A DNA stretch of 64,000 nucleotides from Setoptus koraiensis (lineage: Eukaryota; Animalia; Arthropoda). The stretch is taken from positions 1,364,001-1,428,000 of the forward strand of contig CM106585.1 in the NCBI GenBank assembly GCA_048013815.1, written 5' to 3'. Under the pieces are notes generated by a model. That model searched no databases, was not told the DNA's origin, and saw nothing but the letters and a program-made list of their open reading frames with translations. Each line of letters starts with the position of its first letter. Position 1 is the stretch's first letter. Of the stretch, positions 17,273 to 49,167 are shown piece after piece. Position numbers and translations under genes: made by a program.

Positions 17273-17656
17273 CTAATCATCGTAATCAGTTTCAACTCGA
17301 CGGGTTACCACACGAGTTGGTCGTCTCACTACTCGACGCTCCACAACTCTTGTTTCGACAGGACGAGTTACCACACGGCGACGTACAACTCTCACTGGAC
17401 GTTCGACTCGTTCTCGAACCACTACGGGACGTCGGTGATGGCCATCGTCGCTATCGTCGCTGTCGGATCTTTTTGACCTGGATAAAGGTGTGCTTCTCTT
17501 AACTCTGGCTGTATTACCAACGTTTGCTCGTGATGATGTCAATTGATCTGTTGTTGTAGGGATAGTTGCAACGGCTACAACACTTCTTTTTTGTTTGGCA
17601 TCAACCAAGAGACATGCCAGTGTCAAGAAAACGAAAATTTTCACTATGGCCCTCAT
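17273..17656 (-). CDS. Small secreted precursor A1: signal peptide, three basic cleavage sites (KQKR, RVKR, RSKR), Arg/Val-rich mature peptide
   Basis: MRAIVKIFVFLTLACLLVDA leader; close paralogy to 19475-19798 supports it being a real gene. Confidence 0.85.
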   Translation of the reverse strand: MRAIVKIFVFLTLACLLVDAKQKRSVVAVATIPTTTDQLTSSRANVGNTARVKRSTPLSRSKRSDSDDSDDGHHRRPVVVRERVERPVRVVRRRVVTRPVETRVVERRVVRRPTRVVTRRVETDYDD

Positions 17657-19474
17657 TTGCGATGATCAAAGCGCTGTTTTGTTTTCATTGTTTTGTTGGA
17701 ATTGAATAGGAATAATGATAATTATGATGATAGTTAGTAATAGTGAATTAGAATAAGCAATTCCCGAAGAACTGTTAAGAGAAGTGTAATGTGTCTAAGG
17801 AGAAGTTTGTGCGACGCTCCCTTACATGTTGTTACTATAAAACTTGATTGGTCTATTTCAGCTAGAAAAACCAGATAGGATTTTCTCGAGATGCAATCCG
17901 CTTCAAAAGTCTATCAAAACCGTCGAGCTGCACAATTGTTTTCTTTTTATTGCTTGATACTATCTGTATGTGTTTATCAGTGATGATGTGCCATATATAT
18001 AGTCTGACAAGGTCATGAACATGAAACAAGAAGTTCGGATGAGCAACGCAATTCTGTGAACTTGGTATCATAATAAATGTTAGTGTTAGTTGAACACTAT
18101 TTGCATAAATTTGCTTCCATCTGCTTACACAAATGAATGTCAGAGATATTGTTTGTTTAATTTGTTTCTCAGTTCAGCATTAGCCATATTGTCGTATGAA
18201 CATAGGGTGTACATTCCAACGCTCATTTTTCTTTTTGAATTCCTGACGCAATCTTTGTTGAAATGTCACTCCGTCGAAGCAACTTGTTACATAATTCATT
18301 CAACCAGAGGTGCTACATTTCTAAATTTTTCTATCTCTCTTACACTAACTAACATCACTTGTCCCCGCCGTGATCGCATGGTGGACTTTGGATAATATGC
18401 TTTCATACGACTGATATTCTTTTTCTGGAAGATCGTGCATCAACTAGTGGTACCGGGTCGCGCGAAAAAAAATGAGTCGTACTTGTTTGTTTAGATAGCT
18501 CGCACCACGCTTTGGGAATATTGTTCGAGTATATATATGATAATGATACATGTTTTCTGATTATCGGAAAAAATACTTATAGCTATAAATCACATACTCT
18601 CCTTGAACGTTTCGGGGGCTAGAATAATCTAATAGTTTATAAATAACTATATTTACTGATTGCTTTTCCACAGGATCTGCGCGCAAGATTTATTTGCATA
18701 ATGCTGACATCCAATTTGATGATTGAACCAATCTCATTTGCCATGAGCATATCTTTTGGTGTTTTTGAACTCATCGCAACGGCATTAAAATCAAATGGAC
18801 ATTCCGAGTCGAATGTGTGATAATAAACTTACATGCGGAAGTTGTCAATCTGGTGGTTATCTAATTGAACTTGAAAGTCATTCTTCCAGATTTTAGATGA
18901 TCTGGATACTGAATTTTACAATTATTGAGTGCAACAATCTAGAAATTGAACGATTCAACCTCAATGGTACAACCTCAAATAGACTATCGAAACAGTCTAG
19001 TAATGATGTTGATATAGCAACATTTGTAGCGTTAAAAGATCACGTCTATAGATCGGGCCATTGAGATAATTTAATCAAAATCATTTTAAAATGAGCTCGA
19101 TTCCTATTATGATTTGCGACGGTAAAATTCGACCATCACTTATATCTTTGTCGACTTCACAAATCGAATTTCGTTCGCGCATTGAAACGATGACTATCGT
19201 GAGATCAAAATCTGCATTAATCTAATTTGGCAGAGTAAAATAAAAATGTTAAAAATAAGTTATTTGAGACATCATCTTAGCGATATGTTCATTTAATTAG
19301 CATATCAATACAGTGCAATAATGAGAAGAGTTGTACAAGCAATCTCCCGTCTTTTTTACCAACTGTTGACTCATGTATCGGCAATGCTATGATCAGAACC
19401 ATGCCATATCTGATTCGCCGACTTGGTGATGCTAATTAATTATCTAACTATTTCATGACTAATATCCTAAATAA

Positions 19475-19798
19475 CTAGTATCCATATCCACCTCTCATTC
19501 CTCTGTAACGCCCCATACGGGGACGGATATAGACTGGACGCTCACGGATAACTTCCTCGCGAATCACTTCACGTCGGCGAGGACGGTGGTCACTGTCACT
19601 ATCACTGTCTGATCTCTTTGATCTTGATAGACCTGCGCTTCTTTTAACTTTAGGTGTTGTGTTCACGGATGCTGAAACTTCATTGGTGGTGGATGAGATA
19701 GATGTGTCAACATCTGCGATGACGCTTCTTTTCTGCTTAGCATCAACCAATAGACATGCCAAAGTCACTAAAACAAAAATTGGTAGAATGACCTTCAT
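19475..19798 (-). CDS. Small secreted precursor A2, paralog of A1, with an Arg-rich mature peptide ending RGMRGGYGY
   Basis: Likely start MKVILPIFVLVTLACLLVDA (ATG 19798); shares LACLLVDAKQKRSV, VKRS..LSRSKRSDSD with A1. Confidence 0.85.
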   Translation of the reverse strand: MKVILPIFVLVTLACLLVDAKQKRSVIADVDTSISSTTNEVSASVNTTPKVKRSAGLSRSKRSDSDSDSDHRPRRREVIREEVIRERPVYIRPRMGRYRGMRGGYGY

Positions 19799-21388
19799 TT
19801 TGAGATGATATCTTTCCTTCCTCTGTGAGAATAATGTGTTCAGAATGGATTGTTTCAATGAAGCTAATTAGTTAATTTGATAGGTGTTTCTAATAATGAT
19901 AACGAGGCTAGATTATCTAGCAATAAATACAATTTTCATATATTATAGTATGATATAGGTATATTGCATTGTATACATAATATTATAATATATTATATAA
20001 TATTATTATATTTATTATATATTAATAGATAGTACTTACTGCTCAATTGGGCCGAAACAACTGACTGCAAATGATGAGATGCTTGAGGATGAAACTAATT
20101 ATTACAACTGATACTCATGACAGCCTAGCCACCGTTATATACAGAAAAAAAAATCAACAGTATTCTAATTAGGTACAATTATTGGCATTTGGGGTTACCC
20201 AGCTGCACTAATTGACTATTTACATTACACGTGTATTTTAAGGCTGAACTTTGGCAAGACTAACCAAACCGCTATAGACAATCGCCGTTTGGCAAGTATA
20301 CTACCGGATCATGCTGATGCTAACTGGACTCGCTGCTTGTCATTTACATCCTTCAGATGATTCATCTTGTACAGTCCCACGTCAAGATATTGTTTGTATC
20401 TTTATTTGTATACTGTACATGTTGCTGTTAGACAGGCTAGACAGACACATGCGTTCTATGTCGACCCCCTTATCTATTACCAAATGATATTAGAAACTTT
20501 GGGTGGAATTGATTTTTTTCCCTGGTGTTTTCTGCAGAATGTTGCTAGCCCATTGATCGCAAACATTGACCCATGCGGTTGGGTCAATCTCAAACTGTCT
20601 AAGAAAAAACATGCCCGCGTACTACTGATGATAAAATTTGTTATGTCGGCTCATCGGGAATAAAAAATTTGAGCCCATCTTAAAATAATCCACTACCCTA
20701 CGTATCATATTTTTTTTTAGAGAATGCAAAAGTTCGTCAGTAACAGCATGCAGACGAACATGCGGTACAATGAATATGGAAAAGGAACAGAGTATATCAA
20801 AGTCTGGAATTATTACGCTCACGGAGGAAGAAAATACTGCTCAATTCCTTCTCAACACTAACTCATTAGCTACGCGTTGGCTTCTGACCGAGAGCTTATA
20901 CGATCGAATTCTATCATGACAACAGCAAATGTGAGTCAGTAGTCATTTTCCTGATTACATAATAGATACGATGTCAATATTCAGCTATTTTTCTAAAGAA
21001 TGCTCATGATTTGTCTCTACGAAAGAGAGTTGACTCATTTGAGCTTATTTCTGTTGACTTATGAGACTTGCTGATCCAATAGTGATGAGCGAAAACTTCC
21101 GAACTTACTCTTCTCAGTGATGTGCTAGATGCAAAGTCTGAGAGGATACAAATCATCAAACAACTGACAATTATTTATATTTAACCGGAAATGTTGTGGC
21201 ATTTTTGGACAGTCGCTCCCCAGCGCTACGGAGCTCGTAGCAGCAATGACGATACTGATCTAATGAAAATTGGCTTGACAAAAGGTGAAGTATTTGTTTG
21301 GCATTCTTCTGAATGTAAATAGCAACTAATTAACATATTGTTTTTTATTTACTATCGAGTGTTATTCAATGCATGTGTTCATTGTTGG

Positions 21389-21396
21389 TATAAATA
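21389..21396 (+). promoter_or_regulatory. Candidate TATA box (TATAAATA) for gene B1
   Basis: TATAAATAGT ~320 bp upstream of ATG 21710; the same 10-mer precedes the gene at 23410. Confidence 0.4.
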
Positions 21397-21709
21397 GTGT
21401 TTACAGAAGGACAGAATTCAATCCTTCGATAAACATTTCCATCCAGAAAGGCTCTAAGTAGTTCGATCAAGAATAGAAAAATATAGTAATTAAGTTATCA
21501 GGTAATTTAACTCAGAATATGATTCTAATAGTAACCAAATCTGGTTTGCTGATGAAATTAAGATTGTAACCACAATTGAATGAATTTCAAATTGAATTTC
21601 AAGTGTGGCACACAAAAATCAAACTAATTAATCAGTTTTTTTTTCTCACCACACTACTTTTGAACACTTCCAAATTGAAGAGGAAATCTACACAAAAAAA
21701 GTTGCCAAA

Positions 21710-22045
21710 ATGAAGATGCTAATGCCCATAATTTTGCTCGTGTGTCTGATCGCCTTGTTCGAGGTTAACGCAAAAGCAACACCTCACGAGGAGGAATTGG
21801 CTCAACAAAAAGCTGACCATATTGTGCATAAGACAAAGCACGCCATACACCAAGCTGAAAAAGCCGTCCAGGATGAGGAGACCCATTTGAAATCTGATCT
21901 AAAGAAGGAGCAGCGAAAAGTGCATGATACCGAGAGCAAAATCAAAGTTGACGCTCTTACAGCCAAAGATCTAGGCAAAATGGCCGAGGGACATGTAAAG
22001 AAGGATGTCAAGAAACACCTCCAAAACGCCGCAAACAATCTGTAG
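21710..22045 (+). CDS. Small secreted hydrophilic helical protein B1 (Lys/Glu/His/Ala-rich)
   Basis: Signal peptide MKMLMPIILLVCLIALFEVNA; paralog at 25108-25437 (AK.P.E..LA.QKA, KVD.LTAKDLG.M, K.DVK..L...AN.L). Confidence 0.85.
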   Translation: MKMLMPIILLVCLIALFEVNAKATPHEEELAQQKADHIVHKTKHAIHQAEKAVQDEETHLKSDLKKEQRKVHDTESKIKVDALTAKDLGKMAEGHVKKDVKKHLQNAANNL

Positions 22046-23324
22046 ATTCTTCTCTAGATATTGATTGAACTTAATCCATGTTAGAGCACTTTCTGTTTGT
22101 TATGGTTATCATATTAATCTATTAATCTATTCAGCTGTTTTCACTGTTGGAAGCACATTGCTTCTATCCAGTGATCACTGCTGTAAGATAAAAAAATCAT
22201 TGCTGTGCTCAAAAAGTTTCTCGTGTTATTCTTCACTTTATATCTGATTGATCAATTTGATGTTTGAACAATCTTTCATTTGAACCAACCATCACAGTTG
22301 CAACTCCCAGAAGATATGCATAGACTTTAACCAGACTGCAATGAATTTCATATTGGGCCATTCTCATGAGATAAACCCTGTTCTTTGACCTGTTCATTTT
22401 CAGTATTTTAGTAGGCTAGATCATGATTGAATTACTGATTTTTTATCGCCTGACAGAAACCACCTCAAGTCTAGATGAACGAACGCCATTTGGTTGAGAG
22501 TGAACAGACTTAGCCCCACTGGGTGGGATTCAGGTGCTATGGGATGCGAAAGATAAGTAATACTATCAATAGTATTGATATGCTCAAGCGAGTGGGGTCA
22601 ATATCTGATAATTCAATGTAATGACTAATTTATTATTGTTACTCAAGACTGGTGCGAGTACCTGCATTCAGGCGGATACAGATAGATCTCAGGTTTCGAA
22701 GATTCAGTCGCAAGAGGAAACCAAGCTACTTATCTGCTTTATCCCTATTCATGAATTTACGTCTGTTAAATAATCTTTTGAGTTAATTAATAGCTATGTA
22801 ACATAACTCACTATCGCTAGCGTCATCAATCGAAGAATGTCGACTGAAAGAGCGACTCGGTCGAAAGGTCATTACGACTGTTTGTAATAGTTTTGACATT
22901 TGTGTTTCCTTCATGTCTTATTACATCATTCAATTCGAGCTCTTTGCAACATTCATAAAAGAAAATATTCGTTCATTTTTTCGGTCATGAAAAAATGGAT
23001 GGTATTTCATGTTTACGGATCTATTTAAGTTAATTATGGATAGATTCTGAAGGTAAATATTGACCTCACAGTCGTTTCGTTTGCGACAAACAAAACAACA
23101 ATTGATTATCGCATCAGTATAATTACATTGTATGCAAAGAAAAATATTTATGATGTCAGACACATATTTGGTTCGAAACTCTGGGTGCCATTGCCTTGTC
23201 TGGGTAAACATAAGTTCAAGAGCGAGCTGCTAATTGTCTGGCAATTAAACATGATTATAATATTAGCATTTAAATGCTAGCGAAAGACCGATCTATAGAG
23301 CCTTATTATTTACGTTAAATTCAT

Positions 23325-23332
23325 TATAAATA
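23325..23332 (+). promoter_or_regulatory. Candidate TATA box (TATAAATA) for gene C
   Basis: TATAAATAGT ~80 bp upstream of ATG 23410. Confidence 0.55.
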
Positions 23333-23409
23333 GTCAGTATTCTCTTATAATTTTCTGTGAATTACATAGATTATTGCATTATCATTGTTTCCGCCTCATT
23401 TGATACAAG

Positions 23410-23742
23410 ATGAAATTCTTATTGTTGAGATTTCTGGTGCTAGCCTACCTAATGGTTATGGTAGCTGCTCAATGGGGTGGGCGAGGTCATTGGGGCCACC
23501 ACGATGACGACGACGACGACGACCATCACAACGACGACCACCACGACGATGATCACCATGACGATGACGACCACCACGACAATCATCGTCGTCGTGACGA
23601 CAATCACCGTCGTCGTGACGACAACCATCGCAATCATCGAAATCATCGCAACCATCGTAGAAACGAGCACCGTCGTAGAGACAATGATCATCACGATGAT
23701 GACCACCACGGAGATGGAGGCGATGGTGGCGGTGATGATTAA
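23410..23742 (+). CDS. Small secreted His/Asp/Arg-rich protein C
   Basis: Signal peptide MKFLLLRFLVLAYLMVMVAA, then QWGGRGHWGHH, D/H blocks and NHRRRDD/NHR repeats; upstream TATA box. Confidence 0.8.
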   Translation: MKFLLLRFLVLAYLMVMVAAQWGGRGHWGHHDDDDDDDHHNDDHHDDDHHDDDDHHDNHRRRDDNHRRRDDNHRNHRNHRNHRRNEHRRRDNDHHDDDHHGDGGDGGGDD

Positions 23743-25107
23743 ACAAGAAACAAAAATCAATAAACTCTTTCCGGTAACAACTTCGTGAACTTATACTGCA
23801 CCCAAATAAACCATATAATTGAGCAATTGAATAGTCAGAGCTTCATTGTCAGTTTTCATGTTGCTCAGCCCACAAAAAATCGGGTAATACGGCGTAACTG
23901 GACTGGCTTTACTAAACACGATAAATAGTAGTATTGTAAAAGAGCAAATCTTTTGTAGGCGGTATATGCAACTATCATCTTGATGGGCGCCGTTGAAGAA
24001 AATCAATGCGTGTAAAAGATTTTTCGTCAATGTATGTTAGAATCAGATGATGTTGTGACAACCAATAAAGTAGAACCCTTATCTAATTAATAATTAGCAA
24101 TTACCCTGCAAATAAAAGCGAGATTTATAAATCTAGTGTCGTGGGCAGAGTTTTTTTTTCTGCATTGGTGGCCCATTTCCTCGGCAAACTCAATTGATAC
24201 GCATATCTCGTGCGTCCTCAAAGAAGGTGATACATTTCAATCTGGCCACTCTTGTTCTTGAGCGGTTCAAAAGAATGGTCAGAATGAAATAGGAAACATG
24301 AGAATTTTTATCGAATTGATCATGCGAGTACCTTTCTGACATCAGCGAAAGCGGTCAACTACCAATAGAAATGTATACAATGCTATCACGGCGAGTGAAG
24401 AAGCCGACCAATTACCTTTGACTCTCCCTATCAAAAAACTCTGAGCGCTCCTACCGTGGCGATGGGGTGCTGTTTCAGAAAAAAAAATGGCATTTTGTTG
24501 TGAGACACAAGCAACAGGTGACCAACTCGCTCGGTCGCACAAGTTTGACAGCAATCAACTCTCCATCACCAATGAGGACATCACAGTTGTTGATGATTCG
24601 AGCGAATATTCGCAATTTGACAAAGAGATCGATAGAAGATGTCGCTAGGCCACTCAGGCTCAAGAAAATACTCGTAGGCGGTAAGACTTAGAAAACCATG
24701 CTTCGTCTTTATTTCAGAAGCACAATGGGCGAAAAATCCACAGAAGAAAGGGCTTTCTCTACAGTAACAACTCAAACGAATGTCCTCAACAATTCTGCAA
24801 AACCAGTGGTTTTGTAGCTTATTCTTTGGTACCATGCATGGTTCGAAAAACCTCAATATCTCTAGTGATAAATTAAATTGGCTGAAAATTTAAAACCTAA
24901 CCCATCCTGTAGTTGAAAAAGGAAAACAAAGATCAGCATCGTTCAGACAGTGTATGATGAATTGTCAAGGCTTTATCTATTCATTGAATACAATCGTATG
25001 AGGTACGATCATCGCGATAATAACACAAATGCGTTGATGAAATTAGAGTGAGTCTCTAATTACAGATTGGGCTATTTGCAACAATCAACTTGAACACCAT
25101 TGCATGA

Positions 25108-25437
25108 TTATAATTTGTTTGCGACCTTGTTTAATCCACTTTTGACGTCTTGTTTAGCGTTTTCTTTGATCATGTGTCCCAGATCTTTAGCTGTGAGCTC
25201 ATCGACCTTCAATCTTGTCTCGAAGTCGCTCAAGCGTTGCTTCTCTTTGGCAATTTCGCCTTTCAATTTTTGCTCTTCCTGTTTGTATTGGTTTGCAATT
25301 TTTTGTTCCTCGTTCTTAACTCCCTGGGCTATGTTTTGAGCTTTTTGGGCGGCAAGTTGCTGTTCCTGAGGTGAGGCTTTGGCATCGATCATGACAATTA
25401 TGCTCACAAGCAAAACGATTGACAGTATAACCTTCAT
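25108..25437 (-). CDS. Small secreted hydrophilic helical protein B2 (Lys/Gln/Glu-rich), inverted paralog of B1
   Basis: Likely start MKVILSIVLLVSIIVMIDA at 25437; collinear with B1 along its whole length. Confidence 0.85.
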   Translation of the reverse strand: MKVILSIVLLVSIIVMIDAKASPQEQQLAAQKAQNIAQGVKNEEQKIANQYKQEEQKLKGEIAKEKQRLSDFETRLKVDELTAKDLGHMIKENAKQDVKSGLNKVANKL

Positions 25438-27243
25438 TTTGATTTTTTGGAGTTTTGTTTTGTTTTTTCTAGATAAAGAAATATAAGTGACAGGTTGGGA
25501 TATCAAGAATAGGATTCGGTTAGATTGATAAGTGTGATAGTATGATGAAAATCTTGGATACTTCGACAGGCTGTTAAGAGCTACTCTTGCTCTATCTGAT
25601 TGCTTTCATCACTTACCTGTTGAGATATTTCTATTAAACTAATGAAAGTTTGCTGTCGATTGTTGATTCGTTGATTGCTGTTCCCTCGATTTCGATGAGT
25701 TTATATATTGGTCCTCTCAGAAATGGTGGCGAAGAAATGCATGAGTCAACTATTTACATTGGGTAGAGATAACAACTCTTAGTTTCGTTAACATTTATCT
25801 GTTCCATACCCTTGACAAAGGGGGAAAATATGAGTTATTTGTCTTTGTTATTTACTGAGAGAAGATCCTGCGAAAAAAATAGAAACTAACAACAATAAGT
25901 TTATTATCACACATAATCAATACTACTAGTACGACTATTTGTTTCTACCACTGACACAGACACATTGAAGCATTACAAGTTTTGAGATCTGATCAATATT
26001 TAATGCCATAGATAACTACGATTCACTCGAAAACTATAGATCATAATTTTCAGATAAATGTCAACCGCACGCGATGGATATTGAGCTAAGCGAACCGAGG
26101 CCTTTTTATTTTACTATGTCATCGGTATGAGGAAAGGAAATTGTACTGGAAACGCCGCGTTAGCTGTGGCGAAGTATGGAGAAGCAAGCCTCGCACAGTA
26201 ACGAAGATCAAGAACGCGGTAGCGCACAGGATATTCTTCAGATTTTATCACCTTGAAGCAGATGCCCCTGAGAGTCTAGTGAATTCGTTTAGCTCAATTT
26301 TTTGGTTTCCTTCAATAGGAGACGCAACATGTTTTTAGGATAAAGTGAATGATCCTCGTACTTTCATTTCGAATCTTTTCACTGAAATTTCTGACCCTTT
26401 TTGTGATCGATTTTAATCGAAAGAATGCTTTCTCGGTGATCGTTTTTTGTCTATAAAATCGATAGATTGGCTTCATTGTAGTAACAATTGAAATATAACA
26501 TTTTTCCAAACCATTTTTGTGACTGCTTTTCGGGTTTTTTCATATGGATGTCAGCGTTATGATTTTGCAAGGACCATTCTTTTTTATTTCCCACCAACAG
26601 AAACCTCAAATTTTGATCATTTAACAACACTCTATCGTTTCGGTGGTATCTTGCCAGGCAGAGGTGAAGATACAGTCACCAGGTTATTCTCTATCAATAG
26701 TATTTTCGACTTGCCATGCTGTTGAGATTTTTTAAGGGAGAATCTGTTATGTCAACTACTGCGCGTCAATTATGAAAATCGAGAAGAATATCATTCGAGA
26801 TTCTGGTGTCACAAACTGACAAAAGACAAGTTAATTATAGTAGGTAATTATATATTGAAAGTAACCGATCTAGAATTGGGATCTGTAAAAGTGACGTTCT
26901 ACAGGGACATAGATGGAGTTTAGGCTAAAAATTTAATTGATTGTGACACTATTTATTGGTCAATTTAATTGTGCAATATTCGACAGTTCCTTCTGTAATT
27001 TTATAGTCCTTTTTCACTTTGACTATCAATCATAATCAACAACTAAATAGCATCTACATTTGTTTCTCTAGCTGATGAGAGCAGGACTGAACAGCCCTGG
27101 TTAGATGACGGACCATTGGCATACGATAACTAGCGATGGTAAGCACTCGATGTCAACTACAAAAGTTGCCACCACGATAGCGATTTTGGGCCATCAATTT
27201 GTGTCTGCCAATTAAATTTTTTGTTTATCTGCCCAATGTGTGT

Positions 27244-27564
27244 TTAGTATAGATATGGGTTGCGTCCATAGCGCATAGCGAGCAATTCCTCTCGCTCAAG
27301 CTCCTCTTCTTCCAGTTCAGCTTCTTCTTCAGCTGCTAATTCTTCTTCAGCTAGACCTAGAGCTTGACGTTTAGCTAGTTGATGGGGCTTCTTTCGTTCA
27401 ATTGTGTGCTCATTATGAACGTGTTCGACATGTGCTCTTTTAACCTGGTGTTCATCGTGGTCATGAGTCACTTCGCTCTTCGATGGCTTAGAGCTTTTTG
27501 GTTTGGCTGCATCCACGACAACCATTAAACATACCAATATTACTAATGATGCTGCGACCTTCAT
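27244..27564 (-). CDS. Small secreted precursor D: His-rich pro-segments, VKR/AKR sites, poly-Glu mature peptide ending RYGRNPYLY
   Basis: Signal peptide MKVAASLVILVCLMVVVDA, of the same type as A1/A2/B2. Confidence 0.8.
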   Translation of the reverse strand: MKVAASLVILVCLMVVVDAAKPKSSKPSKSEVTHDHDEHQVKRAHVEHVHNEHTIERKKPHQLAKRQALGLAEEELAAEEEAELEEEELEREELLAMRYGRNPYLY

Positions 27565-28049
27565 TGTGACTAGTTTTTTGATAGAAAAAAAAAATGCAGT
27601 TTGGTTAATCGTTGTACCTAAAATTTAAATTCTGAAGCTTTGCAGCGTTTGCTCAATATGCAAGTCGAATGCAGCATATTAACAGCTATACAAGATAATC
27701 ACGTTGGTAATATATAGCATTCAACAATTTATTGATGCACTTAGAGCGGAATTCTTGCCATCGGTACAATCATTTCGATAGAAGTACAACAATTGAGCTT
27801 ATTTCTACTTTTAAAGTCTACTTACCTGATTACTCCTACTACTTTCTGTAATAAATTAAAGATTACTGTCAAAAATAAACCTACTAAGTTACTATCTTGC
27901 TTTCGAACATCGGTATTCCCAATATATATCAGTTTGGATGTGATAGATTAATTCACTTGTCCTCTTGATGTCCCCAGGAGAAAACAACGGTGTTTGTTTA
28001 ATCAACTTTATTTACACTGTAACTTCCACCTTGAACTTTTCAATATTAC

Positions 28050-28900
28050 TAGATGAATATTATAGAAAATTCTTTGGTTGTTAACCTTTATCATTGCAAA
28101 TGTTACTAATCGACATCTATTTTTTGTTGATCTATTCGGAAATGTCGCTAACAACCAACCAAGTCATGAATAGAGTAGATTCGAAAGGCAAGACAGCACA
28201 AATGAACATTGATTATACTTTAGTTTTTTCAATTTATTCATCTTTGTTTGTACTATCAGTCAATAGTAGGTAGTCGATATTAATGAGTGGCAGTCAGCTC
28301 GACCGAAGGTAAGATGGTTCTTCGAACATGACCGATACTTTACGTTTATGGGACAGTGTTTCCTGGTAAATCCCAAGTCGGGTCAATTTCGATCCAGGAT
28401 TGTAATCACAATTCAGGTTCGTATGAAAATCAATTACTTCCACTAGACCGGAACCTCTCGGATTTCATATTCAAGAGAGTTTCGACTCGATTTATTGCTT
28501 AGGACTCATTAGATATCGTCAAAATCAACAAACTTAGAAGGTCTTGAGGGTACCGAAAATCTAATCATCTAATAATCGACTTGTGCATCAAACGATATCC
28601 AAATCGTTCTGCTGAACGATGAGTTTCTTCGCAATGGGAGCACAGGTGATTTCTAGTGGACTAATAAGCGCTCCATTCCATATCATGGAGAATCGGGAAT
28701 CTCTAAGCATATGGAATAGACTGAAAAAATTCAGTTGATCAGTTGACCTTCGATTAATCTGAGAAGGGCCTGGAAAAATAGTGGCAGCTCGAACCTCTCA
28801 AAGGTGAACTAAACTAGAGCACCGATTCCTTTTCGAAACTTACATATTCTGTTAGTTCCAATTATCATAGTGATTATAAGCTCTAATAGAATAGCATATA
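28050..28900 (+). pseudogene. Possible decayed leucine-rich-repeat gene
   Basis: Fragments across stops and frameshifts read ILWLLTFIIANV (leader-like), LEGLEGTENLI.SNNRL and DSFSKLTYL...IISSNRI, resembling LxxLxLxxNxL. Confidence 0.3.
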
Positions 28901-29237
28901 GTAGCTGTAAGACGAATAGATCGTCGTTACAACGAAAGGTTCATTTTTCGCGGAATTTTTCGAATTGGCCTCTTTCGGACAAACTTTGTTTTCTAGGTTA
29001 ACCCATTGAATAACGAGACAATTTTTTTTTATTTGTTTGGCCCTTGGTTGTCACACGGCAGACTGCGAATAAGCAATCAAGTGGACATCAACAATAGCCA
29101 TTCTCTATTTATTAGTGCATCGGCATGTTTTAACAAGCAATTAATACTCTTCTTATTATATGAATTGGGATTAGATTTCTGGACGAAATGCCGCAAGAAT
29201 ATTATTATTATTAATCAATCATATTCTATAGCATCAA

Positions 29238-29723
29238 TCAACAGTCTTCTTCGCCACCACCGTGACCTCCCTCACAATCATCTGGACAGTCGTCATTGCA
29301 ATCTTCTCCTTTTCCCTTTACATGTCCGTGCGACTCGTCTTCGCATTCCTCTTCGGCGGGCTCCTCACAATCCTCCTCGGCTTCATGAACTGTGACTGTA
29401 TGTTTTTTTACGGGCTCCTCTTCTTCGCATTCCTCTTCGACGGGCTCCTCACAATCCTCCTCGGCTTCATGAACTGTGACTGTGTGTTTTTTTACGGGCT
29501 CCTCTTCTTCGCATTCCTCTTCGACGGGCTCGGCGACTTCTTCTTCACATGCTTCTTCACAATCGTCACCATCGCATCTTCTCACTCTGACAAGTGGCTC
29601 ATTGTCTTTGTTCGAATCTGAAGTTGTCTCTTGCTGTGCCAGTTCATCTCTACTAGCAATGGGGCCGGCACTGATTATGCAGGCCAAACTAAGCAGTGAC
29701 AGTATTGTTAGAATGAGCTTCAT
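29238..29723 (-). CDS. Small secreted precursor E: RVRR site, Glu/Asp/Cys-rich mature peptide (12 Cys) with an internal 28-aa tandem duplication
   Basis: Signal peptide MKLILTILSLLSLACIISA; the unit EPVEEECEEEEPVKKHTVTVHEAEEDCE occurs twice plus a partial third copy. Confidence 0.85.
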   Translation of the reverse strand: MKLILTILSLLSLACIISAGPIASRDELAQQETTSDSNKDNEPLVRVRRCDGDDCEEACEEEVAEPVEEECEEEEPVKKHTVTVHEAEEDCEEPVEEECEEEEPVKKHTVTVHEAEEDCEEPAEEECEDESHGHVKGKGEDCNDDCPDDCEGGHGGGEEDC

Positions 29724-30649
29724 CTTAACGGTATGATTGTGGCTTGTTTTTCAATTATTGTTTGTACGACTGTCACTAGGGGTAAGTAAATGAATTAGGT
29801 CAATTAGTTTTTCGTTACAATCAACATTAACAAAGTCAAGACGGTAAGCTAAGTTTTCTCCTGTAAGACTCACCTGTTGACTGCCCTTGATCAATTACTG
29901 TCACTATTTAGGTAAGACACTAGTGATATGCAATTCTATCTTATATATAGTGTGTGTGTATGCACTACATACACACCTGTATCAGTTTGTATTCCCAGAA
30001 TGCAGCAGAACTGAAGTATTCTCAAATTCGCGATTATTGCCATCACTCGATAGATTCTAACCTTTGTTTATTGAATATATTAAACAAATTTACTATTATG
30101 CAATATTGCTATTATGTAATAATTGAACTACGCTATTATTGGGTAGTAAATAGCGAATAAATAAAGTGGTATCTTCATACCAATTATTGACATTGGAACA
30201 TTAGTTGGCAATGTCGATTGGAGCAAGTGGCACAACTCTGGCGACTCTGGCAGTTATTTGAATTTATCCCTCTAACACGCCTACACTTTCAACTTGCACC
30301 CATTCCTTGCTCATCTAGTCGAGTGCTACTTTGGCTGGCCAATCTAGCTAATTAGTTGTCTATTTACACGTGAATCATCGTCGGTATCCCTCTGCGGTCC
30401 TGCGGAAAGGTTTCAACCGAAGATACCGTTTCGAGCGCCTCACTCTTTGCTGCCGGTTTTTCATCCATAAAGGGTACGAGGGTACAATGAAGGGTATTTA
30501 AGCCTTTACTACAGAAAATAATTGTATAGAATTAGAACCTCTGCCATTGTGATTCTAGGTAAGCTCGTGTTCAGCTGGACGTTGTTTGTCTTTGATAGGT
30601 GAGTGTATGACATATGAACTCTCATTGCCAGACTATTGCATCAGATGTT

Positions 30650-31265: not shown

Positions 31266-32319
31266 ACCGACTTACTACAAATTTTTTGCCAATTCTGACG
31301 ACTGAAGTCGCACTGTCATGCAGTCGTTCATTTTATTCAAACTTCGTCCCAATGAATTATCATCCTTTATCTTATGGGAAATGGATATGGGATTTGCCAA
31401 TCCCATTTCCCATTTTAGAAAATCGGCTCCGAGGTTGCTCACCCATTTTTTTTTCATGAATTTGATTTTTCGGTATAAAAGAATAATTTCCCCGAAAAAT
31501 AAGCATTTTCAGGGAAATTAAATCATGTTTCGTGTTCCTCATAAACAGGTGAATTCGACAAGACCAGAGTTAAGTCGAAATCGGTGTCACGCAGAAAGGG
31601 TTTACCTTGTGCGATATCATCCTATTCAGTAAGTCTATTACAGATACTCACGAGAAATGGTGAGCAGTTGTATCACTATCTCATTGACATTGAAGCATTA
31701 GTCGATATCGCGACATTATCAGTAACTTTCAACTGTTAATTAGTTATCCACACACTTATCTCATAGTTAATGGCACCCATTGCGTGCCCAGAAAGTTGAC
31801 ATCATCAATGTTGTTCAGTCAAACAAACTCATCTTGGCAATGAAACCATTCGAGGTCGTTCGACGAAGCGAAGGAAAGTCATATTGATGTAATTATTATG
31901 ATAGAAATGCACGATATAGTGTTCGGCAGCTTTCAGATTGGCGATCCATTTATTTATGTAATTATCTCGTCTACCAGTTACGTTATGATACTTGAATTAA
32001 GTACAGTGTATATGCAAATAGTGATAATACGCGCGCCTATTTATTGATTGTCGATCGGCATGATCAAGTGATTAGCGACAACAATTGTCACATAATGACG
32101 TTAATTGACTCTCAATGACATCACTTGTTGATTGCGTTTGTACGATTACACAATGAGCGCATTATTATTAATTAGGTAAACACAATCATGTGATCGCCAT
32201 CTCGCTCTCTCTCTCTCTCTCTCTCTGCCCCTGTCCATCTGTGCAATCTTGCAACTTGTCAACTTGCCTATCGACTTATTACGTAATGTCCGTAACGTAA
32301 TTGGCCGTTGTTGTTCTCT

Positions 32320-34781
32320 TCATTGACTTAATCGTCGTGGCAATTGGTCTTCGTCGTTGTTGTCGTTGCCGACATGAATATTATCATTATTGTCGTCATC
32401 ATCACCATCGTCATCATCATCATCATCATCATCATCTGTCATTAGAACTACCTCAACTGTTTTATTATCGTCCAACTCACTGATTGTTTGTTGCGTTATT
32501 CTGGCATGTGCGACACTGTTGTTAGAATTATTTGACGTCAATTGTTTGCTAGATGCTTTACTGGTTGGCCCGTTGCTAAAACCACCGGCTACCACCATTC
32601 TTCTGACAATTTTTTTGTGCTTCATGCGTCGATTCTGGAACCTGTTAGTTGAGGCGAAACGAGCACAATGAACGATTGTAGTTACCTCAAAATCTGGCGA
32701 CATGAAAATGGAGATGCAATGGAAAAATTAAACTCACCAAGTCTTCACTTGTGTTTCACTCAGATCCAACTCAGCGGCCAGCTCGAATCGTTCCGGCGTA
32801 GACAGATAGCGCTGCAACTCGAACCTATGTGTCCGTGTAAAGAGAGTGGCAACCGAGGTGGCAAGACGATTTGCAGTGTGAATGAGAGTTACATTTTCTA
32901 GATTGAATCAGATTGACTTGAAAGCGGATCATCAACTCACCTGTGCTCCAGTCCGAGTAACTGTTGATCAGAGAAGACTGTGCGCGCCTTTCGACGACGC
33001 TGACCGGCCGCCAGACGATTGTTGCCCGAGAAACGGGACCGCTGGCAGAGCTGCTGTTGTTGTTGTGAATCATTTGTCAAGGAGACAAAATTATGATTAT
33101 TGTGCGACTGATGGCCGCCACTTGCTGCATTGTCCGCTGCGTATTGACGAGCTGCTATGTCCTCCTGGCCACCACCATTGCCTGTCGTCTGCTTAGCTAT
33201 AGTTGCCTTGTCCGATCTACTGGCAAATACGAGCGACGAAGCCGAGTTGCCGGATACAGGTGAGGAGCTGGGGCTCGATGTGGATGGCGAAGGTGACGAC
33301 TGTATGCGATTGATGCTCGCCTCATTGTCAGATATTGTATGTCTCTTGGCAAACGGCGACTCTTCGCCACTGTGCTTGTTATTCACCAATATAGATCTGC
33401 CTTGTAGCTGTTGTTGTTGTTGCTGTTGTTGTTGTTGTTGCTGCTGCTGCTGTTGTTGTTGCTGCTGCTGATGGTGTTGTTGTTGTTTGCAAGCGTAACC
33501 GGTAACTGATCTAGCCGTGATTGTGCCATTGTGAGGGCAAACATTGCGCGAACTTTGTTGATTGTGCAAATGTACAGTATCATTGCAACAGATTTGTTGT
33601 TGTTGTTGCCTCGGTGAACTCACCTGTTGTTGTTTGCCTGTTTGTTTGAGCTGCAATTGCTGCAACAAATGAATCTTGTCGCTTGGATCACCCAACTGCG
33701 GCGCTGTGACATTAGATTGCATTGTGGCGGTTGCTGTTGTGGGCGACGATGTTGTGGCTAGTGTTGTCATTGGTGACGATTTATTGCCAATCGCTGACAC
33801 ATCAACAGCGGCTGCCGTTAATATGGCCATCATATGACGAATGTTAGTGTTTTGGCTCAAGTCATAAACGTGCGCATAATCAGGATTGAGAATGGATGTA
33901 ATGAGCGCCGATGACAGACGCTGCTTTGAATTTGATGCGGACATCGGTGATGCAACATTATCATTTGTTGTTGCACTGTTTGTATTATCTAAAGTGTTGG
34001 TTGCAGTGCACAATCTAGATACGACGGCGTTTGTATTGCCGGCAATTGTTGACTGTTGTTGCTGTTTTGTGGCCAAAAACAGATTGCTGTTGTTGTCGAG
34101 ATAACTAACTATGTCACTGTTGTGCTGAGACTGGCAATCATCAGCTTTCAATTGATTATTTGAATATAACGACAATTGTTGTTGTTGTTGTTTACAGTCA
34201 ATTAGGTGCTGTGGCTCAAATTTAGCACACTCATGATGGTGATCTGATAATTGAGATAGATGACTATTGCGTAACTTGTTGTTAGTAACACTGTTATTGT
34301 TTTGGATGTTTTCGGTTGCTGAAGCGACGTTTTGAGCCTCCAAACATAGATTGTACGCGTTTTTGATGGCTGACGCGGACGCTTTGGTGCCTCCATTGGC
34401 ACATCTCAACAGCACCGCTGCCAAACAACTCGTGAGAGTTGTTTGTTGGTTGTGCTGACCGGCAGAATAATGTATACCAATGTCACTGTCCAATAAATCG
34501 TCGTGCATCAATATGTCACCGTGAGCGAAACCGTTAGTTGGTTTCATCAATGGCGCTCTCATAGTGTTTGTATGTTCTGTATCTGGCTGATGACGATGAT
34601 GATGACGATGAGGCTGCTGCTGCTGATGATGATGATAGCCGGTGGTCGCAATTATTGACGCGTCCGGTTGATTGATTGAGCATCTGTTCGACTGTTTGCC
34701 ACTATTGTTGCTGTGGCTCAGTATATCTTTCACATAGAAAGACGATGGCGACGACGACGACGAAGACGACGACGATGACAT
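32320..34781 (-). CDS. bsh: Brain-specific homeobox protein (Bsh/BSX), exons 34781-32941, 32824-32738, 32641-32320 (~749 aa)
   Basis: The spliced homeodomain [59 protein letters not shown] is Bsh/BSX type. Both introns are GT-AG with consistent phase 2. N-terminal eh1-like SFYVKDIL; poly-Gln tract. Confidence 0.93.
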
Positions 34782-35321
34782 TTTCGAGCTTCGCTTCTCC
34801 TGCAAACTATCGACTAATTAGCTAATTACTGTTGACTAGTCAGCTAGTTACTATTGGCTAGTCAGCTGGCAAGCTTGCAAATTATTGATAATTGATAATA
34901 ATAGGCAGCTTGTTCCTAGCCAATTGTGCAACTTGTGTTCGTATTGATCTTACGTAACGTGTGCGTTAGATAAAATGACAGAGGAAACTGGCAGCACCAT
35001 CTATGAAACGATCTGTGCCAACCAACTTGTGCACACGTATGCGCATGAGATCACTATGCAACTGTGACTATATGCAAATTTGATGACTATCTTTGAGCTT
35101 GTTAATGTCGTCATTATATCACCTGACTTGATATAGGTATAGGTAAGCTGACAGTTGTGTCAGACACTTTTACTAGTTAGTTTAGTATGTGTGTCAGCTT
35201 ATTATGTGATATCAAACAAACCAAATACATAATATATAGACTCAAGTGTTGGCACACATTTTGCGCGCGCTAAAATCATGCGCATTAGCGACCTATCGCC
35301 ACTAGGTACCATTCACTTCAG

Positions 35322-40088: not shown

Positions 40089-42362
40089 TTATATCTTGGA
40101 TAATGTTGACTGAGCGGAAGTATTGAATTTCTGTTGTTGAGCTTTGCTGACTTGATTTGATGGGCCCGACAGTTGACTTTGTTGTGATTGTGGTTGTAGT
40201 TGTCGTTGTGGTTTCTGCTGTTGCTGTTGCGATGATTGCAATGGTTCGTCCGATGACAACGATGACGATGTTGACAAACTGTCATTGGTGTCACGTTCAT
40301 CTTGATCGTTATTGTTGTTACTGCCATTTAAATTGCTGTTCTTATATATCCAATCCAGATATTGACTCACATCCACATAGACACCCGGTACGCCTTGTAG
40401 GCCACACGAAACACCCCATGACACCAGGCCGGCTAATTCGTAGCGTCCAAAATTGTCCAAATCATCGTCGTTGTTTTGCTTCACAAATGAGGGTTTGTTA
40501 CAAACGAGCGGACCGCCACCATCGCCCGTACAAGTGTCACTAGCTGGCTCACCTCCGCCACAAACAAACGTTTTGTGCAATTTAAATCTGATTCCTAAGC
40601 GTGTCTTACGTAACGCTTGTTCGCATTCCTCTCTCGACACTATTCTTAACTGCACCTCTTTTAGTATATTTGAATGTTGCCCGCTTCTGTAGGCATCCTT
40701 TCCCCAGCCAGTGGCCATACAATTGCTTTCTTCATCACTAGAGGGCGATGATTTTTGGGGTGCCGCGTTTTGTTTAGGCAAACAAATTGTATCAATGCCA
40801 GGACGAAACACCACAGGTCTGTCCAATTTCAACAGAGCGATATCATTCCAAAGATTGCGACTCTGAAACTCTGGATGAATTATTATTTCGGCCACGTTGA
40901 AATCTTCGTGGGGCAGAAATTCGTCTGTTCGTTGAGTGTCCCATTCGGATAGACGAACTTTTAACATTTTTCGTTTCTTATCAATTTCCAAATTTGCCAA
41001 ATTTTGTCTGCTCGACGAAAATTCAGCCTCGTTTTCATTACTACTGTTTGTTTGTTGTTTCCTAGTGTACGATTCAACACAATGGGCAACAGTGAGTATG
41101 TATTGATCGCTTATTAATGAGCCACCACAAACAAATTTATTAACATTGTCCTCGTGTCGGATGATGGCTGCCATCCAAGGATATTCACCAAAGTCACTTT
41201 CTTGATTTCCCGTCGGTGCCAGTATTCGTCTGTTTATTCCAACTTGATTACGAACACCACAACGGGGCTTGTATTTTTGCTTGGGTTTTGCATCCGGGTC
41301 ACGACAACAAACATGATAACGGCCACAGTCTCCATTGTCCGCAGTGTCGGTGTTGTCCGAATCGGCCGATCTCCGCGATAAAGCTGCCCAAGATTGATTG
41401 GTCGCCTGATCCGAGGACACAGTTATATTCAGGGGCACCAGACTACGCGGATCCAATATGCCAGCTCCGTCTGTAATTATTTGATCGTTTTCGTCACATT
41501 GATAATACGGAACACAAATACAATCTTTATCCTCGACTTGTCTGCCAGTTAGAAATGAGGAACTTTTTTGATTCGAAGGAGGCGCAACATTATTGATAGC
41601 CCTTGTTGTCGAAACTGGTCCTGGTGCACCATTATCTAGATTACTATTTTTTTCACTATTAAATTGGTTTCTTCCATCCGAGATACTCGATGAGACTGCT
41701 TCAGTTGTACTTGAACTTGTTGAGCCATCTTCAGCTAATTTCTTATTATCCTGGACTTTTTGTTGTTGTTTGTGGCGAGAAGAAGGCTTTTGCTGCTGCT
41801 GCTGCTGCTGTTCACTGACTTGCCCACCATCGTGATTAACAAAATTCGGTACACTAGTGAGAGAATCAATTTTTAAAGATGGACCCTTTTCTTGACTAAC
41901 AATCGCGCTAAGATTCTTCAAGATGGAAACAAGCGGCTGGTGATAGCCCTTTTGATCTAAATCAGAATTTGATAATGTCAGTGTGACAATAATTTTATCC
42001 TCATTATTTGTGTTATTACTGGTTGCCAGAATGGATCCGTCATTATTGTCCAAGCTGCTCATCTTATTTACACTCTTATTGTGATTCTTTGCATTGTTGT
42101 GATTGGGATTTACTGTCGAGCTGAGAAGCTCGTATCCTTCCAACTGTGAAGGTTTTTTGGTGACAATCGATTGATTTCTATCATGATTCACTAGATGAAT
42201 CGTAGGTTTCTTATGCACGGTCGAGTGTAGATTTGAGTCGGTGGGTGAACAATTTGTTAATAGATAATTGGAAAAAATAATATAAAACAAAGAGGCTAAT
42301 ATCAGAATATTGATATTTCTTTCTAATCCAAACAATAAGAATTTTATCTTTGTATCCATCAT
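40089..42362 (-). CDS. Clip-domain serine protease homolog (PPAF2/masquerade-like), catalytically inactive, intronless
   Basis: Hydrophobic leader; clip-like CICVPYYQC..ITDGAGILDPR...CGRYHVCC; trypsin domain FGEYPWMAAI, CGGSLI, LTVAHC (His), NDIALL (Asp), and TCTGDGGGPL with the catalytic Ser replaced by Gly. Confidence 0.92.
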   Translation of the reverse strand: MMDTKIKFLLFGLERNINILILASLFYIIFSNYLLTNCSPTDSNLHSTVHKKPTIHLVNHDRNQSIVTKKPSQLEGYELLSSTVNPNHNNAKNHNKSVNKMSSLDNNDGSILATSNNTNNEDKIIVTLTLSNSDLDQKGYHQPLVSILKNLSAIVSQEKGPSLKIDSLTSVPNFVNHDGGQVSEQQQQQQQKPSSRHKQQQKVQDNKKLAEDGSTSSSTTEAVSSSISDGRNQFNSEKNSNLDNGAPGPVSTTRAINNVAPPSNQKSSSFLTGRQVEDKDCICVPYYQCDENDQIITDGAGILDPRSLVPLNITVSSDQATNQSWAALSRRSADSDNTDTADNGDCGRYHVCCRDPDAKPKQKYKPRCGVRNQVGINRRILAPTGNQESDFGEYPWMAAIIRHEDNVNKFVCGGSLISDQYILTVAHCVESYTRKQQTNSSNENEAEFSSSRQNLANLEIDKKRKMLKVRLSEWDTQRTDEFLPHEDFNVAEIIIHPEFQSRNLWNDIALLKLDRPVVFRPGIDTICLPKQNAAPQKSSPSSDEESNCMATGWGKDAYRSGQHSNILKEVQLRIVSREECEQALRKTRLGIRFKLHKTFVCGGGEPASDTCTGDGGGPLVCNKPSFVKQNNDDDLDNFGRYELAGLVSWGVSCGLQGVPGVYVDVSQYLDWIYKNSNLNGSNNNNDQDERDTNDSLSTSSSLSSDEPLQSSQQQQQKPQRQLQPQSQQSQLSGPSNQVSKAQQQKFNTSAQSTLSKI

Positions 42363-47283: not shown

Positions 47284-49167
47284 ACGGCAATTTTATTACG
47301 ACGACTCCGCTCATTACGTAACACACATTGTTGTTATTTTGGTTATTGTTTGGTCGAATGGCCGTGTGTGTGTCGGCTCATATTGGCCACTGGCACGATG
47401 ATTTGTTTGATTTGGCACTGAGTAAATATGGTCGCTGATCCATTATAGATTGGTGGTTGTTGTCGTTGCTGTTGATGTTGCGGCGCCAAGTCGATTTGTC
47501 ATCGTCAACAGAGGCAGCGCGACTCGGCGAAGAGTTAACATTATTACGCGCCTCTCCCCTGGATATTGCTCAAATATTGCTAAATATAAATATTACTCTC
47601 TCGCTCTCCCTTCATGCTCCCATCGTCTGTTTGTTATATGACGTCAATTGCCCTCGAATCTGTCTGCACAAACACACACACTATTTACACAATAAATATG
47701 GAGCACAATCACGCCGAGCAGAGAGTCAAAAGCAGAGAGGCAATCGGTTGCCACTTTTCCTAAAAGTGTTTTCGTGCCAACAAGACCAGCCACTACTCAC
47801 GCTCAACCGCTGCGTTAATGGATGAATTCAAACTGGGGGGATAAGTCACTGAACTATGCTACTTGAAATAGCACCAAGAGCAGTGCGACAATAAATGCAA
47901 TAATGGTGAGAATGGGCCCTTTTCCACACAACCGTTTTATACAAAACTTTTATCTCTATTGCATGCGGCCGACTGCACACACTGTGCCAACATTACCATG
48001 TATTGGAATATTATATACCGTATATAGGGTGCAATCGGCCCCAGATGATGCCCTCTATAGAGCAAACTGGTCGGCACGCAAGCAAACAATCTTGTTATAT
48101 GTGCCCACCTATATGGTTGCGTCGTGATTTAATTAAAGTGACACTGGTCGCGCTGCTGTGCCCTCGACCATTAACGGCCAACGACAACACTCTTCAATCA
48201 CATCGACGATGCCCTCATTGTCGATGTGTTTGATTTCAATCGGTCAACAAGTGACATTGCGATTGTCCGTTGCGGACAGCATCGGTGCGGCGTCGAGACA
48301 AGTGGACATGAGCGCATGTATGCGGATATATCTAGATATCGCGAGACGTGCCAACGGAATAAATGACCTTTTGTGAAATGCGATGGTTGCTGGAGCGAAG
48401 GAATGGAATATGAATGTCAAACAGAGTGACAATGGCTCCGAATTGAGCATTGTCGGCCCATAGTTGATGATTTAATTTATGTCATCGCCATGCGATTGTC
48501 TAATTGTTGGCTAATCTTTGTTTTGTGGGCCTCGTGTTGCTACCGACACAACATGCTTTGCTCGTTGGCCAATTGGCCAGAATGGCCGGCAGAGGAGGCA
48601 TTTTGTGAGGAGCAGTTTGCATGGCACAAAAGGGCTATTATACAATAATAACAATAGCAATTGAGCACATACAGTTGGCCGGTTGGCGTCATTTTAAAGT
48701 CAGACCACTACTAACACCAGCACTAATGACGACGAAGCCACTAGCGCCATTAAAATCATCACCACCGAACTGAATTGAACCAGCACTCAACTGAGCCAGC
48801 CAGTCATCACATCACAACACAGCAAAGCACAACTCAACAAAACTAAACTAAATCAATCTGATATTGCAACAATTACGTAACTGGCGCAATGTTTACTTTT
48901 CTGTCTCTCTTGCTCTCCATACATGATGCGCATTGGCAGGCTGCACTTCACTTTTATCATCGCATAATAATAATAATAATCGTGATGGCAGCATGACTAA
49001 ACGGCGAGCAAATCAATCATGCATTCTCTCACTCTTTCCAGAGAGATGCAACTAGCAGCGATGGTCCATTTGTTTGTTTTTGTCGGAGCACACAAACATA
49101 GAGCACACACTTGAGAGAGAGAGAGAGCACTCTATGGTATGGCTATATTGCCACCATTGGCCACCAT

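Follow-up and report, generated by a model that had tools for sequence, protein, structure and literature searches.

Why do seven small genes for secreted proteins lie side by side within 12.5 kb of Setoptus koraiensis contig CM106585.1? The stretch that we analyzed, called the window here, covers 64 kb of this contig (assembly GCA_048013815.1, positions 1,364,001 to 1,428,000), and a first-pass annotation made from the letters alone had described the seven as an orphan, intronless and co-regulated cluster whose oppositely charged products, once cut by a convertase, would assemble by complex coacervation. We find that the genes are real and conserved, that they are syntenic with their counterparts in a sister species and restricted in distribution, and that a promoter module and protein cleavage motifs are conserved along with them. 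The explanation that we favor, with moderate confidence, is a lineage-restricted, locally duplicated and co-regulated gland secretion module, possibly a salivary one. In window coordinates, the coding regions are these:

17273-17656, minus strand: A1, 127 amino acids, from the list of open reading frames (ORFs)
19475-19798, minus strand: A2, 107 amino acids counted from the ATG at 19798, from the ORF list
21710-22045, plus strand: B1, 111 amino acids, from the ORF list
23410-23742, plus strand: C, 110 amino acids, from the ORF list
25108-25437, minus strand: B2, 109 amino acids, paralog of B1
27244-27564, minus strand: D, 106 amino acids
29238-29723, minus strand: E, 161 amino acids, from the ORF list

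All seven ORFs were recovered from the ORF listing of the window at the positions originally reported for them, and each opens with a hydrophobic N-terminal stretch of the signal-peptide type. The real start of A2 is nested within a longer ORF that has a TTG start. The coding regions are separated by 1.37-1.91 kb, and a crude six-frame scan of the 64 kb found no further plausible signal-peptide ORF of at least 60 amino acids. Seven such ORFs in 12.5 kb, against zero in the other 51 kb, is not a chance arrangement. The two proposed paralog pairs are borne out by identities of 54% between A1 and A2 and 42% between B1 and B2; no additional decayed paralogs were found in the window, where the matches to C are low-complexity noise. 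At 23449-23788 and 29262-29736, several long ORFs (Thr/Ile/Val-rich, Phe/Leu-rich) run in alternative frames or antisense; these were rejected as genes. They are by-products of the low-complexity C and E coding sequence, and overlapping ORFs of this kind recur in the sister species.

In that species, represented by Logan run SRR33593474, all seven genes are present in the same order and orientation between the same flanking genes. The cluster was pieced together from three contigs, which are genomic. Six of the seven copies are complete and intact, and C is truncated by a contig end. Ratios of nonsynonymous to synonymous divergence (dN/dS) were calculated by the Nei-Gojobori method at a synonymous divergence of about 0.7-1.3, which is near saturation.

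Contig L011, sister species: ERCC1 (93% identical), A1, A2 and B1
Contig L006, sister species: the 3' part of C, then B2
Contig L012, sister species: homolog of the window ORF at 32320-32703, then E and D
L011, 5467-5916: A1 ortholog, dN/dS 0.11
L011, 3530-3853: A2 ortholog (P0107), dN/dS 0.24
L011, 966-1301, minus strand: B1 ortholog, dN/dS 0.21
L006, 1100-1429: B2 ortholog (P0106), 83% identical, dN/dS 0.10
L012, 3573-3875: D ortholog (P0108), dN/dS 0.30
L012, 1519-1998: E ortholog, dN/dS 0.13, with all 12 Cys of the mature part kept

These ratios of 0.10-0.30 compare with 0.03 for the neighboring ERCC1, and the cluster genes evolve several-fold faster than this housekeeping neighbor. The constraint is specific to the reading frame, as the annotated frame gives the lowest ratio in gap-free ortholog pairs, and differences at codon positions 1, 2 and 3 number 13, 8 and 32 in B2 and 29, 17 and 52 in B1. 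Indels between orthologs are confined to His/Asp patches and Arg/Val repeats. The C ortholog, whose 3' part keeps its frame where L006 ends, is too repetitive, and its alignment too unreliable, for a dependable dN/dS. We conclude that the seven are real, that they code for protein and that purifying selection acts on them.

A common layout also appears upstream of the coding regions. A TGYAAATAR element precedes six of the genes (A1, A2, B1, B2, D and E), and a TATA box comes 50-105 nt downstream of it in A1, A2, B1, B2 and D. Another 75-110 nt past the TATA box, A2, B1, B2, D and E have a consensus splice donor (CAG/GTAAGT or GTGAGT), and a pyrimidine-AG then occurs shortly before the ATG.

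17657-18110, minus strand: A1 upstream region, with the element ATGCAAATAG at 18097-18106 and a TATA-like box about 345 nt upstream of the ATG
19799-20230, minus strand: A2 promoter and 5' untranslated region (5'-UTR), with ATGTAAATAG at 20216-20225, TATA box at about 20141, GTAAGT donor at about 20039 and candidate acceptor at about 19823
21313-21709, plus strand: B1 promoter and 5'-UTR, with a block of ATGTAAATAG and TAATTA at 21313-21340, TATAAATA at about 21389 and a donor-like GTAATT at about 21501
23325-23742, plus strand: C with its upstream part, coding region included, with a TATAAATAG TATA box about 85 nt upstream of the ATG
25438-25760, minus strand: B2 promoter, predicted exon 1 and 5'-UTR intron, with ATGTAAATAG at 25750-25759, TATATAA at about 25707 and a TCATT initiator-like block; on the same strand the putative intron has donor GGTAAGTG at about 25616 and a YAG acceptor, with exon 2 starting at about 25468
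27565-28020, minus strand: D promoter and 5'-UTR, with TGTAAATAA at about 28008-28016, TATA box at about 27928 and CAG/GTAAGT donor at about 27825
29724-30369, minus strand: E promoter and 5'-UTR, with TATATAA at about 29949, ACAG/GTGAGT donor at about 29873, and acceptor and putative exon 2 start at about 29769; upstream on the same strand, a conserved ATAAACAAAGG about 100 nt upstream of the TATA box and a distal GTGTAAATAG with TAATTA at 30349-30369

The longer form RTGYAAATAG occurs seven times in the window against 0.9 expected, and five of the seven copies are sense-oriented and 320-650 nt upstream of A1, A2, B1, B2 and E. The copies outside the cluster, at 32012-32021 (plus strand) and 47681-47690 (minus strand), have no signal-peptide ORF that we could see downstream. 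Taken as a composite, element, TATA box and donor occur four times on both strands of the 64 kb against 0.04 expected, each time sense-oriented and upstream of a cluster gene; a two-part version of the composite gives six against 0.49 expected, again all upstream of cluster genes. In alignments with the orthologs, the promoter blocks stand out as conserved islands within otherwise diverged flanks. The 27-nt B1 block that contains the element and the TAATTA site is identical in the ortholog, as is the TATA block, and B2 keeps its element, TATA box, TCATT block, donor GGTAAGTG and acceptor. Element, TATA box and donor recur at similar spacing in the A2 ortholog and at matching distances in the D ortholog, and the E ortholog retains the TATA box, the donor ACAGGTGAGT and the acceptor.

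Because these donors are conserved in five genes, we infer that A2, B1, B2, D and E probably have a non-coding first exon and a 5'-UTR intron. The term intronless thus fits the coding regions of the cluster but probably not these five genes as a whole. By its letters, the element is a candidate Fox site that agrees with the consensus RYAAAYA, and some copies also match the POU octamer. The Drosophila salivary glue genes all depend on the Fox factor Fork head (PMC2064058), a parallel that we draw as an analogy only. Given the excess of the composite and its conservation in the sister species, the cluster is very probably one regulatory module, as the first-pass annotation had supposed.

The products are of several designs, and the compositions first described for them (cationic A, anionic D and E, a His/Asp/Arg-rich C and an amphipathic helical B) agree with the charges, residue counts and helix predictions. 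A1 runs from its signal peptide through a Ser/Thr-rich spacer, three Lys-Arg (KR) sites and a Ser/Asp acidic patch to Arg/Val-rich repeats, and Ser/Asp runs and His patches characterize the A family. With net charges of +14 for A1 (isoelectric point 11.7) and +10 for A2, the whole proteins are strongly cationic as claimed, but what follows the last KR site is a polyampholyte whose net charge is only +4/+5. B1 consists of a signal peptide and a single long amphipathic, His-rich helix. Both B proteins are predicted to form one long helix (predicted local distance difference test, pLDDT, about 85-89 across residues 30-110), with heptad-spaced hydrophobic residues and a hydrophobic moment that exceeds 99% of shuffles. 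The mature part of C is of low complexity in His, Asp, Arg and Asn (22 His, 30 Asp and 15 Arg per 90 residues; net charge -16). D, with a net charge of -7, has a His-rich N-terminal part, two conserved dibasic sites and a Glu-rich C-terminal part, the C-terminal piece carrying -11. In E, a signal peptide and a propeptide ending in RVRR precede Cys/Glu-rich 28-residue repeats; the protein has a net charge of -46 in 142 residues, an isoelectric point of 4.05 and 12 Cys, and its AlphaFold2 model is of low confidence or disordered (pLDDT 45). His is frequent in B1, C and D; in E, both His and Cys are. An 84-nt tandem repeat lies at 29334-29531 within E (2.4 copies, 97% identical to each other), unlike the 28-residue repeats of the sister species, which have diverged from one another. 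This suggests that the repeat was recently duplicated or homogenized in the window lineage.

Release of the peptides by convertase cleavage had been proposed, and dibasic or furin-type sites are indeed invariant in the A family, D and E. The three KR sites are unchanged in all four A sequences, and a heptapeptide between them, S-x-(P/G)-L-S-R-S, is near-invariant; both dibasic sites of D are kept in its ortholog, as is RVRR of E, directly before the first Cys. On the strength of these motifs, A, D and E are probably cut there. Net charge is likewise kept between the species in A (+8 to +14), D (-7/-8) and E (-42/-46) but not in C (-16 versus about 0 over the part seen) or B1 (+2 versus -5), so that the proposed signature of opposite charge survives for only part of the cluster. 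Across its members, the anionic proteins far outweigh the cationic ones.

How the genes came to lie together is suggested by their 5' ends. Signal peptides of different families share 3.53 positions, versus 2.37 in shuffles, and a single shuffle out of 5000 got as high; A, B, D and E are alike beyond composition, with C the outlier. At the nucleotide level, members of different families align over no more than about 40-70 nt in the region of the start codon and signal peptide (74-77% for A and B, 63% for the B1 ortholog and D). B2 and D also have a weak full-length similarity (25% identity over 95 residues, E-value 0.002 against the window). Since the signal peptides are alike, B2 resembles D and the two-exon layout is common, these data support an origin of at least A, B, D and E by local duplication, after which the mature parts diverged. 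C, D and E were originally taken as three singletons, but the likeness of signal peptides across families and the match of D to B2 mean that they do not all stand alone. No extended promoter similarity between paralogs was found beyond short motifs, and the idea of a "frozen promoter" was rejected, as paralogs align over about 40-70 nt at the start of the signal peptide only.

Duplication could in principle account for the cluster by itself. The genes would then be neighbors by descent only, with duplicated 5' ends and unrelated roles in different tissues, and some of them (A and D) would be prohormone-like sources of short, KR-flanked signaling peptides. Paralog promoters that are alike in short motifs only would fit such a history, as would the near-invariant A heptapeptide and the two dibasic sites kept in D. 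We nevertheless consider it unlikely, as the common upstream module argues for joint regulation, purifying selection acts on the long charged domains too, and the Pfam scan of the seven proteins gave no match to a neuropeptide family. The D C-terminus was considered as an RYamide or other amidated peptide, a reading that was rejected: the amidation signal is not conserved, its Gly-Arg becoming Gly-Pro in the ortholog.

The claim of orphan status was upheld by searches. The A family, the B family and D with E returned one match each, all from SRR33593474, and no relatives beyond the sister species were found in word searches (A and B) or in a full HMMER scan of 1.84 billion representatives (D and E), the latter with a remote sensitivity that is lowered by the use of a single two-sequence profile; the E ortholog was missed by this profile and recovered through synteny. 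In more distant relatives (contigs L001, L004, L007 and L010, with ERCC1 64-74% identical), no cluster members lie beside ERCC1, and the neighbors differ. One of these contigs encodes, close to ERCC1, a 239-residue secreted protein (L001, 8500-9219, minus strand) whose layout, an acidic patch and then an Arg-rich block of the (ARR)n type, resembles that of the A family. As a distant A homolog it was rejected, with an hhalign probability of 0.6%. A PDB sequence search with the B profile gave nothing below an E-value of 0.18, an Rfam scan of 15-33 kb gave nothing, and an exact-sequence look-up of the window proteins found no entry in the searched collection. The Pfam scan and profile searches likewise gave no clear assignment to known, unrelated families: apart from noise, Pfam gives a sub-threshold match of A1 (20.4 bits) and A2 (23.8 bits) to New_glue (PF21827), whose gathering threshold is 31. 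All four A proteins match this family weakly, and the best E-value, 4.1e-6, is still under threshold.

New_glue describes the Drosophila ng genes, defined by a length below 180 residues, a signal peptide, an Ala-rich internal region with at least three consecutive Thr and an Arg/Lys-rich C-terminus (PMC10835880). A1 (TTT) and its ortholog (TTTT) agree with all four points, and A2 and its ortholog have TT only. The A family further resembles the ng genes in its uninterrupted coding region and in its location beside other secreted-protein genes, but it differs in its three conserved KR sites and Ser/Asp patch. D. virilis and D. hydei have no ng genes, which places the origin of these genes within Drosophila (PMC10835880). 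The named relatives of the window ERCC1 reach at most about 51% identity and include no fly among those listed; its close relatives (64-74%) are sequencing-run and metagenome contigs. Because the ng genes arose within Drosophila and no fly is among these named matches, the likeness of the A family to New_glue is convergent architecture and not membership, and common descent is excluded. A role of the ng genes themselves in adhesion is only presumed (PMC10835880).

Do the products nonetheless build an adhesive or a structural material outside the cell, for example feeding cement, egg glue or a spermatophore? Cationic A and anionic D, E and C would then condense by complex coacervation, possibly with phosphorylation of the Ser/Asp patches and bridging by Ca2+ or Zn2+ through His, Asp, Glu and Cys. 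The conserved opposite charges of A versus D and E would suit such a material, as would the Ser/Asp runs and His patches of the A family, its convergence on the ng architecture and the joint secretion implied by a common promoter module. Polyelectrolyte bioadhesives such as sandcastle-worm cement consist of co-secreted proteins of opposite charge with Ser-acidic patches, and known cement proteins carry Gly/Tyr/DOPA-type (3,4-dihydroxyphenylalanine) or long phosphoserine blocks. The cluster resembles the worm cement in its opposite charges and in Ser-acidic patches open to phosphorylation, and would resemble it in co-secretion as well, but its proteins have no Gly/Tyr/DOPA-type or long phosphoserine blocks and their balance is strongly anionic. 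Because charge is not kept in C and B1, the charge of processed A is modest and the anionic excess is large, a coacervate adhesive is possible but weakened, and overall we judge an adhesive or structural role improbable. The original proposal is partly supported: the evidence backs the secretory, co-regulated and processed character of the cluster, and coacervation is speculation.

Just as doubtful is a set of humoral or epithelial defense peptides made by gut, epidermis or fat-body-like cells, in which Arg-rich cationic A comes from precursors with an acidic pro-piece and His-rich, anionic C, D and E sequester metal: the genes are small, clustered and taxon-restricted, the A precursor has the order signal peptide, spacer, KR, acidic patch and cationic domain, and His abounds in B1, C and D and, together with Cys, in E, but Pfam gives no antimicrobial family, the boundary between acidic patch and cationic domain has no conserved dibasic site (the A1 ortholog reads QRQ), numerous Glu interrupt the Arg/Val region, and the sequence evidence contains no sign of inducibility.

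For the gland secretion module that we favor, the following course can be proposed. The genes would have arisen at least partly through local duplication, as the signal peptides of A, B, D and E and the two-exon layout of A2, B1, B2, D and E suggest. Most would comprise the element, a TATA box, a short non-coding exon, a 5'-UTR intron and a second exon with the entire coding region, and because this promoter design is common to most of the genes, they would probably be turned on together in one secretory cell type. All products are predicted to enter the secretory pathway, with A, D and E probably cleaved. The output would be a mix of disordered or single-helix, highly charged proteins rich in His, Asp, Glu and Cys, and it is the conserved charge of A, D and E, this composition, the disorder or helix and the joint regulation that point to a secretion cocktail from one exocrine gland. 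Salivary glands would be the most likely source, given the reported plant-mite context and the large, uncharacterized, lineage-specific secretome of one eriophyoid (PMC7738191), and the proteins would then act at the animal-plant interface. Binding of divalent metal ions or of host polyanions and polycations is a plausible role.

Several observations weigh against this account. The promoter pattern was defined post hoc and in a single window, no strict splice donor was found in the A1 upstream region (17657-18110), C has neither the element nor an intron, and the distal element of E is not kept in its ortholog. Values of dN/dS between 0.1 and 0.3 are unlike the arms-race signature frequent in effectors. 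Finally, the case for co-expression and for a gland of origin is built from DNA. A bolder form of the gland module, in which one gland with a dedicated Fox/POU-type enhancer makes a purpose-built polyelectrolyte and metal-binding secretion, for example a Ca2+/Zn2+-chelating saliva at the feeding puncture or a coacervate cement, is a long shot. If it were true, that enhancer could reveal the rest of the gland secretome genome-wide in one of the smallest arthropods.

Comparable arrangements exist elsewhere. The SSGP families of the Hessian fly combine a conserved 5' end and signal peptide with a diversified mature protein. They are like our cluster in being tandem genes for small secreted proteins whose signal-peptide region is more similar than the mature part, but the mature parts here are under purifying selection (0.1-0.3) and not hypervariable, and similarity across families extends over about 40-70 nt. 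In plant-parasitic nematodes, unrelated or barely related gland effector genes have one short upstream motif at a fixed position to the core promoter, as seen here, and such "effector-associated promoter motifs" are taken as a sign of expression in a common gland (PMC10946958). That system belongs to another phylum and has another motif, whereas the present motif comes from one window and is known from DNA alone. For the eriophyoid mite Aculops lycopersici, 612 secreted proteins were predicted; 351 of them are small and have no place in orthogroups of non-herbivorous arthropods, and only 15 of these 351 are in multi-member orthogroups (PMC7738191). The candidate salivary effectors of eriophyoids and spider mites are like the cluster proteins in being small, in having a signal peptide and homologs in close relatives only and, if the taxon is right, in their plant-feeding mite context. 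The likeness is one of description, and the present set differs in that seven genes form one syntenic cluster with a common promoter module.

New here are the conserved promoter module and the predicted 5'-UTR intron; taxon-restricted gland secretion clusters were already known. How eriophyoid-type mites manipulate plants is obscure, and no salivary protein of theirs has been characterized (PMC7738191). The cluster supplies concrete candidates for expression and saliva studies, and a search of the whole genome with its short promoter pattern can bring out further genes that belong to this gland. As compact, conserved and extremely charged disordered examples, the proteins are easy targets for metal-binding and phase-separation assays.

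The cluster is flanked on the left by ELP6 and ERCC1 and on the right by a poly-Asp ORF and a homeobox-like gene, followed by a CLIP-domain serine protease, a RING-finger gene and PACS. The poly-Asp ORF (32320-32703, minus strand; 127 residues with a long poly-Asp run) is kept in the sister species at L012, 54-353, a short way upstream of the E ortholog. Its neighbor in the window, a 622-residue poly-Gln ORF (32937-34805, minus strand), ends in an apparent homeodomain start (RRRKARTVF...). This is probably a homeobox gene of several exons, with which the cluster ends on the right. Further out lie a 757-residue, single-ORF CLIP-domain trypsin-like protease (40089-42362, minus strand) and the N-terminal exon of PACS (phosphofurin acidic cluster sorting; 62512-63927, minus strand). 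Both are ordinary arthropod genes whose closeness to the cluster is probably coincidental. The CLIP-domain protease, together with a Spaetzle gene in a relative, points to an arthropod genome. On L007, L010 and L004, where ERCC1 is about 73% identical, this gene is flanked by a Forkhead gene, a small PPSY-motif protein, a membrane peptide of 42-56 residues, a WD40 gene and RPS23. Because none of these neighbors is in the window, the ERCC1 neighborhood has been rearranged between lineages.

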